Assembly (NCBI GenBank): GCA_964035545.1
Contig: CAXIUT010000281.1
Span: forward strand, 1 to 14,174
Source: Bugula neritina
Taxonomy: Eukaryota > Animalia > Bryozoa
Direction: 5' to 3'
DNA length: 14,174 bases
Part shown: positions 1-14,174 of the stretch, piece after piece
Position numbering within the stretch: position 1 is the first letter of the stretch
Layout: each line of letters opens with the position of its first letter
The notes under the pieces: generated by a model
Seen by the model: only the letters and a program-made list of their open reading frames with translations
Database searches by the model: none
What the model was told of the DNA's origin: nothing
Program-made: the position numbers and the translations under genes

Positions 1-597
1 TACTTTATGGGGTAGTATAGTTTTGCTAATGAAGTTAGTCTAGCTGTGTGTCCTCCCATCAAGATTAAGTAATTTACTGAAGGAAAACATATCAACGAAA
101 CCTTCAAACTCATCAACAAATAGTACAAAACAGTCCTAGAACAAAAATATGGCAAAAAAGTACAATATCTACTAGTTCTGTCTCTCTTGGGAATAACCTA
201 CCACCAAGTCTACGATAACATCTTTGAAGAGATGAATTTCTAAGAAGTGATGGGGAAGATAGGAGAGTAGATATGTAAAAAGCAATAGAAGAAAAAGAAA
301 TATCTGATAATAAATAACAGTCTTTTACACAAGAAGTAAATATTGCAATAATTTCAACACAAATATCAAATAAAGATCATTTTCATACCACCCAGATCTT
401 CAATGCTCAATCCTTTATAGTACTTATTTAGTTAGATAAAGATGATAATGAAAAGTAGAATACAAAGAAATAGAAAAATATACAGATAGCTACTAGAATA
501 AATACTGTAGGAATTCAAATACAAAAACATGCATAACTTCTACTACTGCCTCAAAACATATATTCAACTATCCATCAACCAGTAACCCTTCAAATGA
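1..597 (+). CDS. IS630/Tc1-mariner (DDE_3-like) transposase-derived protein, 5' part outside the window; catalytic triad apparently replaced by N/N/Q
   Basis: Frame 1 is open with TAR=Gln to TGA 595-597. YSFANEVS resembles F-x-D-E-S; YLIINNSLLHK resembles LIMDNAxxHK; IIFIPPRSSMLNPLQYLFSQIK resembles LLFLPPYSPDLNPIEQxFSxxK. There are 34 residues between the second and third triad positions. Confidence 0.75.
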
Positions 598-2744: not shown

Positions 2745-3464
2745 TCACTTTCTGAAGTATATTTTATAATTTTTAATATTTTTTTTATTTTTATAATTTT
2801 TAACTTGTTTAACAACTACATCTTCTCTAACAACATATTAAGACACAAACAAGACGGCCATGACTATCAGGACTAGGAAATATATTCCTATAAAGCTAAT
2901 AATGATGGTCATTCCTCCTCCAGAGCTAGCCATTTCTGTTAGAAATATCTATTGGCTTTTGGCGACTACAAGCAGACAAATGATAACCAAAAAGGCAATC
3001 AGCATGAGGATGTAAATAAATAAGATGCATTTGATTTGTTGTTTTTGTTTTTGGTAGTTTTTTCTAAATTGATCGCAATCGAAAGTTCTGGTGTTAGCCA
3101 GTTAATAGTTGAAAAGGTTGTGGCAAACCTAGCAACTAATGGTTTTGTTGTTTTGTTGTTGCTATAGTTTACGTTTTATCCACTCCCTTAGACAATGTTC
3201 ATGGGCGTATTATATTGAACCATTGCATTTGCAGGGAATTATTATCTTGTTGCTTTATTACTATGGCATAAGACTGCTGCCTTGTTATTATGGCTATAGA
3301 CAGATGCGGCATTACTTTTTATGGGATGTCTTTCTAATCTATTTAAGCTAGCTTACCAGATGTTTTTATATGTTGTTCATAGGTGCTATCTTCTGGGATG
3401 GAAATTTAACTGGAACGCACATCGAAGAAGAATCCATAGGCTAGGGCTAGTTGTTGCTTTCCAT
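2745..3464 (-). CDS. RING-CH (RINGv/MARCH-type) E3 ubiquitin ligase with two C-terminal transmembrane segments, about 239 aa
   Basis: ATG 3464 to TGA 2745 is open with TAR=Gln. CRIC...IPCKCNGSIQYAHEHCLREWI...SCQVC gives the C4HC3 pattern, followed by hydrophobic runs ILFIYILMLIAFLVIICLLVVA and MTIIISFIGIYFLVLIVMAVLFVS. An in-frame 18-nt GT..AG at 3339-3356 may be an intron. Confidence 0.9.
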
Positions 3465-3592
3465 TCTATGCTTTCGAAATTAATATAAAACCATTTCATT
3501 ACAATTCATAAATATAGCGACTCAGCCATTGATACTGGTTGATTTTTATTCTTTTTAAATATTGTTATGAATTAAAGTTATTTCGAATGACA

Positions 3593-3753: not shown

Positions 3754-5262
3754 ATGTAGCAAAAGCATTTTATTTTGCTTCCTAACAAGCCTGCCCACTT
3801 CATATCAATAGGTACTTCTTTGAACTGTATTTTACCTTCATCAATCAAACCAGTCAACACTGCCCAGTCTATATTTGAGTCTCTGAAATATCTACCTAAA
3901 ATATCATACTTGGACAAGTAAATCAAATAGTTGAGTATTACTTGTATTCCAGCTTTAGACCTTTCGTACCAAGTGGAGTAGTCTTTCAAACCTTCATTAG
4001 CCTATTTGATTAAAACATAAAAATAAACTTCAATAAAAGGCTATCTATCAGGACATCGTTCTGGGTTGATATAACAAAATGGCAAACTGCTGAGATATAA
4101 AGGATGTGGGAATGATGGGGAGGGGTTCGTAGTCTTAAAAGGACAACTTTACGGCAGTCATTTTTTTCATACTGCTAAAAGAGAGATGTACATGACTGAG
4201 TTAGTTAATAGTCTGTTGTTAAAGGAAATAGGAGAAGAAAGTGCCAATAAATCTCTTTTGTTCTATTAGTATCCTCGCAATATAGCTGAATACGGATTGA
4301 AAAATGATATACCTTTGCTAGGGAAGTACTGTTGTGTATTTGAGACAATTGGAGATAGAAGAATTGGAACGCATCTCATCAGTCCTTTGGAATTGTTATT
4401 TGTTAATTTGTTTTAGGCTAAATAAAGTGATTTATAAGGGTTGTTTAGAGATAGATAAAGGTTGGATTAATATGGTTTAACATAGCTGCTGATAGACTTT
4501 TAGATAGAAGTCGATAAGGGGGAAAGGTTTATTGAAAAGTATGATCAGAGAGAGTAGTTGCATGGATATATTAGTCTTGGAGAGTTGATCTAGAAAGGAA
4601 TGTTAAAAATGGTTGATAATCCATAGGAAGTAGTAACTATGGTTGAAAATAAGTTTATTGGGAATAATAAATTTATATTGAAGTAGTTATTAAAGTAGAA
4701 AAAGAATTTGTTGGGATGGATAAACTTATTGGTGGAGAAGGTGGGTTGGTAGATGGGTCAGATAAAGCGTATATTTAGCATGAGGGGAATTAACTGGGGA
4801 TATTTTAGTGATAAGGGAACCAATCACTGTAACGCCCATCTTAACAACTTTGTTATCAAATAACCTAAAATCAATAGTAGATTAAGTATACCACTTGATT
4901 TCGATATGGCCTTTACCAAAGAGGAATTCATTCCATTCCAGGGAGAGAAGTATGCATAGAGGGATGATGATGGATTTGAAGGGTTGTTAATGGCAGAGTA
5001 TAGAGCTATGGAAATGGCTGTTTCAGGAATGGAGTTGATGGATAACTTCAAATATGGAATCTAAGAGGATAAAGAAAATTCTTTGTTGAGGAAGATGTTG
5101 AAGGTGGTGTTTAGAGACGGATTAGTTAGGAGTTTTAGATGGGGAATGAAGGGAAGAAAAGAAGAGTATGAAAGGATAAATAAAGAGTGGGACTTTAATA
5201 TCAAGGAAATTCATGGTTTGGTCTAGAGCTGTTTGCTTATTTCTAATGATTTCAACACATGA
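3754..5262 (+). CDS. Kinase-like fold protein resembling the SelO (protein adenylyltransferase) family, 502 aa, no introns needed
   Basis: 1509-nt frame open with TAR=Gln, ending in TGA. Motifs in order: SGHRSG (4048), LRYKGCG (about 4090), TAKRE (4171), HCNAHLNN (4825), LDFD (4894). These parallel the SelO motifs GDGR, QLKGxG, RE, HGVMNTDN and IDYG. The CDS is well supported; the family call is by eye. Confidence 0.7.
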
Positions 5263-7522: not shown

Positions 7523-7623
7523 CAATGATATTATTGATGTTTTAATTCTTGTATTTTGTCAAATAACTATGGATCGATGATTGAAAAAGAGTTGTGAAAT
7601 AAGCTGTAGATCGAGTAGAAAGA

Positions 7624-7831
7624 TCATTTATTAGTTTAGTGATACAAATTCATATTTTTTTGGACACAAGATTCATATTCTGAGAGATAATCTGCTTATA
7701 GAATAAATACATTTGCAGTAGTTATCATTAAATCCATAATTCTTTTAGCATAAATGGTACTCTATCTATTTCTTTCGACAGGGATCTTTCTTTAATACTC
7801 TTCTTTCTTATATCACTACTGCTTTATCCAT
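7624..7831 (-). CDS. Twin CX9C (CHCH) small protein, 62 aa, Cox23/CHCHD7/Cmc-like, probably mitochondrial intermembrane space; intron 7692-7710
   Basis: Spliced product: MDKAVVIQERRVLKKDPCRKKQIEYHLCQKNYGFNDNYCKYYLSEYESCVQKNMNLYHQTNK*, with an exact C-X9-C-X10-C-X9-C pattern. Confidence 0.85.
7692..7710 (-). other. 19-nt spliceosomal intron
   Basis: GTATTTATTCTATAAGCAG on the minus strand; removal gives the second CX9C with exact spacing. Confidence 0.88.
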
Positions 7832-7925
7832 TTGCTTTAAATATTTCACTAATATAAATAAACAAATAATTGAGATCAGCCAATATAATGGTGATTAATA
7901 TATAAAGTAATAATTCTTTTATAAG

Positions 7926-9352
7926 ATGGAGGAGAATAATTCTAAAATGAATAGACGAGATCGCAAGAGACATTAACAATAGATGCAAAAACTAAAAGAT
8001 ATTCAATAACTGGAGTAAAATTTTGAAAAAAAACTTGGCTTTCAATAAGATCTACTTCAATTAGGTAAAAATGATAAACCTAACTAAAATAAAAAATATC
8101 ATAAGAAGTTTAATGAAGAAGAAAATAATTAATATAAATAAAAAGCAAGGAAAAAAGGTAGAGAATAAAAAGGAAACTATCATCACAACTATAATCCTTT
8201 TAATTAGTTGATAGGGGATAAATAACAGAAAGACAACGAATAAGATGAGTCTGAAGAGTTTTCTGGTAGAGGGTATCGAGGAGATAGAGGGGATAGAGGA
8301 AGAGGTGATAGAAATAGAGGAAACAGAAACAATAGAGGAAGAGGAGAATATCGAGACTATGATAGAGAAAGGAGGGAAGAGGATAATGAAGAGAGACCTA
8401 AAGGAAGAGAAGACTATCGGCAAAGAGATAGAAACAATAGAGATGAAAGGAGGGAAGAGGATAATGAAGAGAGACCTAAAGGAAGAGAAGACTATCGGCA
8501 AAGAGATAGAAACAATAGAGATGAAAGCAGGTAAGATGGAAATAAAAGATATGAAAGAAGATAAGATAAATATAACAGAAATGAGAAATAATATAAAAAC
8601 TAGGATAAGAGATAGTATAGACAGGAATGGAATAGGGATCATTAATAAAACAAATAGAGAGTTAATTTCAGAGATCAGTTCAGAAAGGAAGAAAATCGGC
8701 CAAAAGGTAGAGAAAATAATCGTGGAAAGGGAAGAAATGTTGAAGAAGAGGAATAATTGCAGTTTTAAAACAACAAAATAGATGAAGGAATGAATGATTT
8801 GAAGAATTAAAAAAGAGAAAGAAAGGAAAAGGAGATTTATGAAGGAAAAGAAAGATTTGATAAGGGAAAAGAAAGATTTGAAAAGGGAAAAAAAAATGAC
8901 AATTTTTACAAATACTAGAAAAGAGATGATTACAAAAAGAATAAGGATTATCGAGTGGAAAGAGAGGATAAGTCAGATTTTAAACAAAAGAACAAGTATG
9001 ATAGAGAAGATATCTACCAGAAAAGGTAGAAGTGGTAGAAAAGTAGCAAAGTTGAGAAGTCTGTTGTGGAGGAATAGAGAGTTAAGGAGATAGCTAAAGA
9101 GATAGGAAGTAGAGAGAGCAGTGAAATACCCTAGTATTTAATATGTCCGATAACTCAGGGTAATATTATAATGATATAGTGTTGATGGTATCTCCGATGA
9201 TCCTGACGAGTTGTGGTCATACGTTTGAATAGGTGGCGATTCGGGAGTGGTTGGTCAAACAGAAGAGTTGTCCGTTGTGTCAGAAGGCAGCTTAGACCTC
9301 TAGTTTGATTAAGAACTTTGCATTGTGCGAAGTTTGTTCTTCTTTTAAGTGA
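7926..9352 (+). CDS. U-box/RING-like domain protein (E3 ligase) with a long charged, RG/RD-rich disordered N-terminus, about 468 aa; intron 9160-9179
   Basis: Frame 3 is open from ATG 7926. The C-terminus after splicing reads EIPQYLICPITQVLMVSPMILTSCGHTFEQVAIREWLVKQKSCPLCQKAAQTSSLIKNFAL and ends at TGA 9350-9352. Confidence 0.9.
8367..8527 (+). repeat. 78-nt (26-aa) exact tandem duplication within the U-box gene
   Basis: ERREEDNEERPKGREDYRQRDRNNRD twice, starting at 8367 and 8445. Confidence 0.95.
9160..9179 (+). other. 20-nt spliceosomal intron
   Basis: GTAATATTATAATGATATAG; removal restores the U-box segment CPITQVLMVSP. Confidence 0.88.
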
Positions 9353-9386: not shown

Positions 9387-9586
9387 ATTGTTCAATAGGC
9401 TGTAATATGATAATTGTTCAATAGGCTAATATGATAATTGTTCAATAGGCTGTAATATGATAATTGTTCAATAGGCTAATATGATAATTGTTCAATAGGC
9501 TGTAATATGATAATTGTTCAATAGGCTAATATGATAATTGTTCAATAGGCTGTAATATGATAATTGTTCAATAGGCTAATATGATA
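9387..9586. repeat. 50-bp higher-order repeat, four copies, made of alternating 26-bp and 24-bp monomers
   Basis: ATTGTTCAATAGGCTGTAATATGATA alternates strictly with ATTGTTCAATAGGCTAATATGATA. Confidence 0.97.
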
Positions 9587-12756: not shown

Positions 12757-12813
12757 GGGGTTGGGGTTGGGGTTGGGGTTGGGGTTGGGGTTGGGGTTGG
12801 GGTTGGGGTTGGG
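12757..12813 (+). repeat. Internal telomeric tract, (GGGGTT)9.5
   Basis: Perfect G4T2 repeats of the Tetrahymena type, followed directly by unique sequence. Confidence 0.97.
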
Positions 12814-12831: not shown

Positions 12832-14106
12832 ATGAGACAAACAGAAGCAGTAAATATTTTGCTTATTTCTGCATTGGCTGTTAACTAGAACTTTCCCTTC
12901 AAAATATCTCCACTTCCCCAGTCAGTCAAAATCATACTTATATATAAACTCATCACCATCATGAATAAGTGCCATCGAATCCACATCTGCTTCTCATAGA
13001 CCAGAGATTCTTCTTACTAAGCCTTTAACTTCTTGTTGATATCCACTTATTGCAATTATACAAAGGTTTAAGAGTCTTATTTATTAGAAGATCCATAGAT
13101 AGAACCAAAACTTGACAGAAGGACAAAAAAACAAGAGATAGGGATGTTTATTTTCAAGAAAAGAGTTGTGGTGATGAGAGTTGAAGTGTCTGGATGGAGT
13201 AGAGATTGGCTGCAAGTGTTATTGGATAATATAGCACTGAAGAACCAATATGAATTGAAGACCGAGAGGGCAGAAGTGGCAAGCAGAGAGTTTTGTTTGT
13301 TGTAGTTCAGCAACTGAATGCCAAATAAAGATAAAGTCATCACTGTTGAGAGGATATTCGGGTAGTTTTAGCAGGAAAAAGAACTGCTGAGAATGTATCC
13401 GTAGATATTTAAAGCAAAAGCTATGACGTAGTTGACGATGGAGAAGGAAATAAGAAGACAACCATAGAGCTGACTGCCTTGAGAGTAGTTTTAAGCCCAT
13501 TTTATTCCCCAAAGATAAGCAAGGTCTATTACAATGATGATCTAGTTAAAATAAAGGTACCTGCCAGACGATAAAAATATAAGAGAAGAGTTGACAGAAA
13601 TTGGAGAAACTTACCAGCCAGTGATTTTATAGTTGTAGTGTGAGGAGGAATATGAGGACAGTGATGACGAATTTGGTGAAGAAAAGTCCTTAATTGATGA
13701 CAGTTGCTATTCTAGTGGTACAGCAGAGCATGAGAAAGATCATTAGACAGCTGAAAAGGAAAAGTGAGAGAGTTATCCTATAGATGACTGAAGCAGAAAC
13801 GCAGTCAAACTCATGAGTAAGAGTCAAACAAGTGATCCCATCTGCTATGATATTCATGAAGAACTCCCACTACCTGAGGAGGTACATGGTGAGATATACA
13901 AAGAGGATGAGGGAGAAGTAGAGGAGAGAGTACATAAATTTGATGAAGGCGATTCTTCCGATGATTTTGAGTGCAGTTTAGAAGAACTCTTGACAGCAGA
14001 ATTGGATGCAGCAGCAAGTACCACTGACTACTAGTTGGTTGATCATATTGTATTAAATATTATTTATTTGTCTTACAGTTATAAAATATTTCTAATTATC
14101 GTTTGA
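12832..14106 (+). CDS. Long frame (about 400-424 codons) with an acidic C-terminal half and five internal TGA codons: either a TGA=Trp gene or a pseudogene
   Basis: Frame 1 is free of frameshifts from the telomere junction and ATG 12832. Internal TGA at 13315, 13471, 13480, 13765 and 13789. Strong GAN codon bias from 13560 to 14030 (EEEYEDSDDEFGEE, DEGDSSDDFE). The end is either TAG 14032-14034 or TGA 14104-14106. The start is uncertain. Confidence 0.5.
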
Positions 14107-14111
14107 TTTAC

Positions 14112-14174
14112 GGGGTTGGGGTTGGGGTTGGGGTTGGGGTTGGGGTTGGGGTTGGGGTTGGGGTTGGGGTTGGG
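14112..14174 (+). repeat. Terminal telomere, (GGGGTT)10.5
   Basis: Perfect G4T2 repeats to the end of the window, with the G-strand running 5'->3' toward the end. Confidence 0.97.

Follow-up and report, generated by a model that had tools for sequence, protein, structure and literature searches.

The first 597 bases of the window, by which we mean the entire 14,174-base contig C290 of a 216-Mb bryozoan assembly, appear to be the 3' two thirds of a single-copy IS630/Tc1-type (DDE_3) transposase-derived gene that lies on a ciliate somatic chromosome. The encoded protein would retain the third catalytic glutamate, carry an asparagine in place of the second catalytic aspartate and be missing the first, so that its site reads (no Asp)/Asn/Glu, not the N/N/Q of a preliminary description of this DNA. 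In DDE enzymes, the loss of either aspartate abolishes metal-dependent catalysis. Because the second aspartate is an asparagine here and there is no aspartate for the first position, the protein is very probably catalytically dead and unable to cut DNA, and on this point our analysis agrees with the preliminary description.

The ciliate contig and its genetic code

Contig C290 is ciliate DNA contaminating the bryozoan assembly, and it is a somatic-type (macronuclear-type) chromosome. Its GC content is ~30%, and its right end consists of GGGGTT telomere repeats (Table 1). Other small telomere-bearing contigs are likewise low in GC and have genes packed with in-frame TAA/TAG codons, and the complementary CCCCAA repeat opens contigs C87 and C122. 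The GGGGTT end, the low GC content and the TAA/TAG-rich genes that C290 has in common with these small contigs therefore identify it as a somatic-type chromosome of the contaminating ciliate. Beyond its left part, the contig is gene-dense and somatic-type, with a telomere at the right end only. The left end has no telomere and the break falls inside the transposase-derived frame, indicating that the gene was cut short by the assembly; its 5' end would have been removed by the contig edge and not by biology.

Table 1 Coordinates of the features in the window and of the paralogous loci in the same ciliate
Feature	Position	Strand	Evidence or description
IS630/Tc1-derived (DDE_3) gene, 3' part, 198 codons + TGA (putative)	1..597	+	PF13358 and family HMM; 5' end lost at contig start
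'MGeYSFAN' (residues 3-10), counterpart of MGYSY(K/R)N	7..30	+	MAFFT placement; shuffle test
RNase-H-like catalytic domain core	133..462	+	PF13358 (DDE_3) model positions 29-138 of 146
Asn105, second catalytic Asp position	313..315 (AAT)	+	Real Asp-to-Asn change
Glu140, third catalytic residue in 'LNPLE'	418..420 (TAG)	+	Retained
TGA stop	595..597	+	Coincides with C-termini of family members
RINGv domain (MARCH-type zinc-finger gene)	3123..3311	-	38.4 bits; 9 in-frame TAA/TAG; not part of the transposase gene
GGGGTT telomere, 10.5 repeats	14112..14174	+	Terminal; marks ciliate somatic-type chromosome end
C219 paralogue	L025:1865-3262		466 codons; 'LIFIDE', 'LVVDMNSIH', 'IPPCSPEFNPLE'; intact DD39E triad, catalytic Glu = TAR
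C133 paralogue	L023:2234-3454		407 codons; both Asp kept, Glu lost
C122 paralogue	L024:3073-4620	-	516 codons; first Asp to His, Glu block degenerate

In addition to the terminal telomere, we noticed an internal GGGGTT tract of 9.5 repeats at 12757-12813, which lies 1.3 kb from the terminal one, has unique sequence on both sides and could represent either an assembly join or an alternative site of telomere addition. The minus strand between this tract and the terminal telomere carries a Serinc-like frame with a weak score of 14.9 bits. On another ciliate contig, a perfect 386-base palindrome at L023:1391-1794 (G000:C133, about 59390-59793) runs from GGGGTT repeats through unique sequence into CCCCAA repeats. 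At this point, an 85-kb contig contains two ciliate molecules with telomere caps fused head to head, implying that the larger 'ciliate contigs' of the assembly are partly concatenations. The window also contains a perfect 50-base repeat in four copies (9387-9586) and a 78-base repeat in 2.2 copies (8367-8536), the latter lying in the frame 7581-9185, where it encodes a protein segment rich in Arg, Asp and Glu. An Rfam search of the window gave no match.

The meaning of the in-frame TAA and TAG codons was read from conserved proteins. Six ciliate HSP70 loci were aligned to the host HSP70, and of the 63 aligned positions with TAA/TAG, 25 have a host Glu and 3 a host Gln; counted by codon, Glu is found for 16 of 44 TAA (8 of the 12 with conserved flanks) and for 9 of 19 TAG. 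The invariant Glu of the HSP70 motif HLGGEDFD is TAG in C87 and TAA in C95. The RINGv gene provides a check within the contig itself: its open frame (2745-3521, minus strand) contains 19 in-frame TAA/TAG codons and reads C-TAR-V-C opposite the CELC of the host RINGv, while its remaining TAR codons sit in an acidic stretch after CRICL. Among the transposase-derived genes of the same ciliate, the Glu of the 'DE' block is TAR in both C219 and C133, and in C219 the Glu of the 'NPLE' block is TAR too. These alignments indicate that the ciliate uses the peritrich code (NCBI table 30), with TAA/TAG as Glu and TGA as the sole stop, and UAR = Glu has been reported for peritrichs (PMC11687900).

With TAA/TAG as Glu in this ciliate, the TAG at 418-420 is read as a normal catalytic Glu, and the change of the third residue from Glu to Gln that the preliminary description had claimed disappears. 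There is a lesson on method in this, namely that the meaning of TAA/TAG in ciliate DNA has to be settled before catalytic residues are read. Here, the correction of the code turns a 'dead' glutamine into an ordinary glutamate.

Identity of the frame and its catalytic positions

As previously described, the first TGA in frame 1 is the stop at 595-597; the frame contains 14 in-frame TAA/TAG codons, which we read as Glu. The proposed search with the DDE_3 HMM confirmed the assignment to IS630/Tc1: in a six-frame search of the genome, the match of PF13358 to bases 133-462 scored 36.5 bits (cut-off 28.6) and spanned four TAG and three TAA codons, and the frame passes the gathering score for DDE_3 membership. 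A family profile HMM, built from the paralogues described below and public fragments and representing the ciliate's own family, aligned to residues 35-186 without a change of frame and scored 45.6 bits. The window protein is identical to the family at 18 of 38 well-conserved columns, and most of the others are conservative. The blocks that define the fold are also kept in one frame, namely beta2-beta3, 'YLIINNSLLH' and 'IPPRSSMLNPLE..F..IK'. The window was not among the matches of a genome search with NCBIfam NF033545, and its longest stop-free piece in this region (124-240, 39 residues) had no Pfam match. Tiny-intron candidates within bases 1-606 were considered, and none was needed or supported; a candidate intron at 582-606 would delete the TGA, yet the C-termini of the family end there.

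The preliminary description had suggested recovering the 5' end and looking for a helix-turn-helix domain. The closing motif of this domain, MGeYSFAN, is present on the contig and is the sole part of it there; the remainder lies beyond the contig start, and no contig was found for it. A DNA search of the whole genome for an overlapping contig returned the window alone, and when the assembly was queried with the C133 helix-turn-helix piece and with an N-terminal family profile, only C133 and C219 were recovered.

The family counterpart of this motif, MGYSY(K/R)N, is near-invariant and closes the DNA-binding (helix-turn-helix) domain 37-38 residues ahead of the first catalytic Asp; it is present in C219, C133, P0001, P0011 and P0013. 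The likeness extends past the motif, in that the family 'NVS' corresponds to 'NEVS' in the window protein. Among 200,000 shuffled versions of the window protein, one contained a pattern of the MGYSY[KR]N form, the pattern having been set after the match was seen, and the match would be unlikely to arise by chance even after a generous correction for this post-hoc choice.

The codons at 28-30, 313-315 and 418-420 are AAT, AAT and TAG, as the preliminary description had reported, and the 34-residue spacing that it had noted is found between codons 105 and 140. However, its interpretation, in which all three catalytic acids of an otherwise intact transposase were swapped for amides, is very improbable, and of the three changes only that at Asn105 stands. 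All 11 family sequences have Asp in the column of Asn105, with a conserved Tyr four residues before it and a conserved His five residues after it. At codon 140, the interpretation draws on the fact that TAG is Gln in the commonest ciliate code, but TAA/TAG align with Glu and not Gln both in this ciliate and on C290, which contradicts the claim for the third residue. The column of Glu140 (family LNPxE) is E in the relatives, the codon being GAR in the public fragments and TAR in C219. For AAT 28-30, the stretch 'YSFANEVSL' loosely resembles a hydrophobic-DE strand, with a Pro at +8 and a Gly at +18 in register with a bacterial IS630 copy; against this, 'MGeYSFAN' fits MGYSY(K/R)N far better than chance, and placing the first Asp at residue 10 requires a loop of 43 residues before beta2, while the relatives have 17-33. 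The codon also lies outside both HMM matches, that of Pfam and that of the family profile. Given the fit of MGeYSFAN to the family motif and its position outside the Pfam match, Asn10 is most likely the native Asn of the DNA-binding-domain motif and not an altered catalytic Asp.

Of the complete D, D, E triad, the window copy keeps only Glu140. Residues 1-70 contain no Asp at all, and the sole Asp among the 198 residues, D71, is located in the beta3 turn. The placement of the first catalytic strand varies with the method: MAFFT deletes the strand, pairwise global alignments lead to N39, K40 or E47 depending on gap costs, and the local HMM alignment starts downstream of the first-Asp strand. 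From the MGYSYKN-like motif to beta2, the window protein is at least nine residues shorter than any relative and has no recognisable hydrophobic-Asp-Glu strand. The first catalytic Asp is thus absent, its strand being either deleted or unrecognisable, and the fold itself may be damaged, since the core is shorter on its N-terminal side and this strand is missing.

The preliminary description had taken three shape-preserving changes as an argument for domestication. This argument loses its basis, because one of the three residues is an unchanged Glu, one is most likely a native Asn, and the remaining one is a plain G-to-A transition. The change from GAT to AAT is a single transition for which mutation alone suffices, and therefore its 'shape-preserving' character says nothing on selection.

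Related genes in the same ciliate

The DDE_3 search of the genome revealed three more ciliate loci, C219, C133 and C122, which we read with TAR as Glu (Table 1). All three are full open frames, and the helix-turn-helix regions of C219 and C133 are 54% identical over 65 residues. No flanking inverted repeats were found for the three genes beyond AT-rich chance matches. The window copy shares with these paralogues the MGYSY(K/R)N motif, beta2-beta3, '(D)xNxxH', 'PPxSPxLNPxE', in-frame TAA/TAG codons and a location on somatic contigs with CCCCAA/GGGGTT telomeres. In contrast, its identity to them is only about 21%, it does not have the D, D, E at 39-residue spacing that is found in C219, and it has lost the second Asp, which is kept in C219, C133 and C122 alike.

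When a stop-free piece of C219 was used to query 1.8 billion representative proteins, 14 hits were obtained, mostly short fragments and up to 71% identical, which we read as the same family in related ciliates, fragmented by standard-code gene calling. An orthologue of the window copy was absent from these 14 matches. A degenerate pattern for 'IPPRSSMLNPLE' had 0 matches in metagenome contigs, and no homologue was found for a 64-residue piece of the neighbouring gene (4075-4266) that could have led to syntenic contigs.

IS630 copies of another kind were also observed in the same assembly. Contigs C212 and C300 (L001-L005), with a GC content of 43-48%, carry standard-code copies that score 108 bits with DDE_3 and have no in-frame stops, and we take these two to be bacterial contigs. 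In each of the copies, a frameshift-type junction separates the helix-turn-helix and DDE parts.

Retention, decay or mobility

The surroundings of the frame were compared with the rest of the assembly. In the proposed copy-number check, bases 1-960 matched only themselves in the 216-Mb assembly, which makes the locus single-copy at the DNA level in an assembly where the ciliate germline is probably not represented. Within the window, no inverted-repeat partner was found downstream of the frame, the 5' side being off the contig. A satellite of 1.7 kb starts 360 bases downstream of the frame (961-2658) and consists of 73.8 copies of a 23-base unit (AACTAGTAGTCATTAGTACTATC) with 97% identity. An identical 42-base sequence is present on both of its flanks (918-959 and 2628-2669). 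We also noticed a 21-base inverted near-copy of the satellite unit (19/21 bases) at 14017-14037, 75 bases inside the terminal telomere, and this near-copy is too good to be chance.

The uninterrupted frame is part of the argument of the preliminary description, and it carries little weight. With TGA as the sole stop, an open frame is weak evidence of a gene, and TGA-free frames of 120-800 codons occur by the dozen in the window, some of them antisense or running across the satellite. Within bases 1-597, frame 1 has no TGA while frames 2 and 3 have five and three, respectively, which has a chance of roughly 0.02. The codon-usage score of frame 1 is the best of the six (-0.08 vs -0.17 to -0.55), where the weakest genuine genes score from -0.11 to 0.04 and the flanking non-coding DNA from -0.43 to -0.72. 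Base composition differs by codon position in frame 1 (p = 1e-4), whereas in the flank 598-960 it does not (p = 0.4).

From these features, we consider it somewhat probable that frame 1-597 is a retained, domesticated and catalytically inactive gene. The telomere-capped somatic-type contig, the single copy and the somatic paralogues without TIRs make this the most plausible reading. The window gene would then be a divergent paralogue of the other somatic IS630/Tc1-derived genes of the ciliate, including C219 with its full DD39E; its product could not coordinate two metal ions and so could not cut DNA, and it would most likely survive as a domesticated DNA-binding or partner protein. Retention is supported by the lack of any frameshift over ~150 aligned residues, by a stop at the homologous C-terminus and by the conservation of the core motifs. 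What counts against a retained gene is that the start codon and most of the DNA-binding domain are missing with the 5' end, that the coding score only equals that of the weakest real genes, and that the composition of the frame is unusual. Asp makes up 0.5% of the protein (1/198), compared with 3-7% in the paralogues and other genes; G occupies the first codon position in 13% of the codons, compared with 17-36% in real genes here, a depletion of GNN codons; and the GC skew, unlike that of the + strand genes of the window, is negative.

The same anomalies suit a decaying relic, that is, a Tc1/IS630 transposase gene, or a paralogue that had already been domesticated, which lost its function and is drifting in somatic DNA, with the Asp-to-Asn change and the missing first-Asp strand as ordinary damage. 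We regard this as rather unlikely, although several observations point to it. Beyond the near-absence of Asp, the GNN depletion and the negative GC skew, the catalytic core is shorter in its N-terminal part than that of every relative and has no DE strand, the codon-usage score is poor across the last third (bases 451-594), open frames are cheap in this code, one transition suffices for the GAT-to-AAT change, and a satellite array lies directly downstream. Against a relic stand the preservation of the most conserved motifs of the family, the alignment free of frameshifts with its stop at the homologous C-terminus, and the lack of TGA in frame 1 but not in the other two. In addition, the third-position GC of frame 1 is 42%, compared with 24% GC in the adjacent non-coding DNA, which indicates little neutral equilibration.

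An origin in germline (micronuclear) or transposon DNA at the left contig end appears improbable. In that case, the frame would derive from a Tc1/IS630 element that is, or once was, mobile and that has its 5' half and its inverted repeats off the contig. Such an origin would be in line with the single telomere at the right end, the break of the contig within a gene, the unusually gene-poor region with its 74-copy satellite and the artificial joining of ciliate molecules elsewhere in the assembly. On the other hand, there is neither a second copy of bases 1-960 in the assembly nor an inverted-repeat partner in the window, and the remaining contig is gene-dense, somatic-type and telomere-ended.

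We return to the reading as a retained and inactive gene to place it among known ciliate systems. Paramecium and Tetrahymena, the best-studied relatives, use domesticated piggyBac excisases. To our knowledge, the genome-rearrangement machinery of peritrichs is uncharacterised. The piggyBac-type domain PF13843 was not found on any ciliate contig of this assembly, whose ciliate part may be incomplete, and all 14 of its matches are on host chromosomes C1-C8. For this reason, a role of the IS630/Tc1-derived genes in peritrich DNA elimination is conceivable. We consider it doubtful, to a high degree, that these somatic genes cooperate, with C219 as the catalytically complete member and C133, C122 and the window copy as inactive ones in a PiggyMac/PgmL-like manner, perhaps as the DNA-elimination machinery of peritrichs.

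Paramecium PgmL and the Blepharisma PiggyMac-like proteins comprise one complete triad plus inactive paralogues (PMC6143343, PMC9942806). The set described here is similar in that one triad is complete (C219, DD39E), several are incomplete and all are somatic genes, but PiggyMac and PgmL belong to the piggyBac DDD superfamily while the present genes are of the IS630/Tc1 DDE type. Closer in family are the somatic (MAC-) DDE_3 genes of Blepharisma stoltei, which have complete triads and are up-regulated in development (PMC9942806), and the somatically encoded DDE_3 genes TTHERM_00227320 of Tetrahymena and GSPATP00034752001 of Paramecium (PMC9942806, PMC3558436). Like these, the window gene would be a DDE_3 gene on a ciliate somatic-type chromosome with no visible transposon carrier. 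Unlike the Blepharisma DDE_3 proteins with their complete triads, the window copy keeps one acid of the three, is cut short at the contig edge and comes from a ciliate that uses the peritrich code. The Oxytricha TBE transposase and Euplotes Tec ORF1 share with it the Pfam family, the D-D-E architecture and the ~34 residues from the second Asp to the Glu. However, TBE and Tec are multi-copy, germline-limited and flanked by inverted repeats, with active-type triads, whereas the window copy is single, without the Asp residues and situated on a somatic-type contig capped by a telomere.

On present evidence, the window copy is an ordinary truncated case of a phenomenon already described in other ciliates. 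Together with C219, C133 and C122 it would form a set of four somatic IS630/Tc1-derived genes, of which it is a very divergent member, in a ciliate that uses the peritrich code. If this set proves to be selected and expressed in nuclear development, its members would be candidates for the genome-rearrangement machinery of peritrichs.
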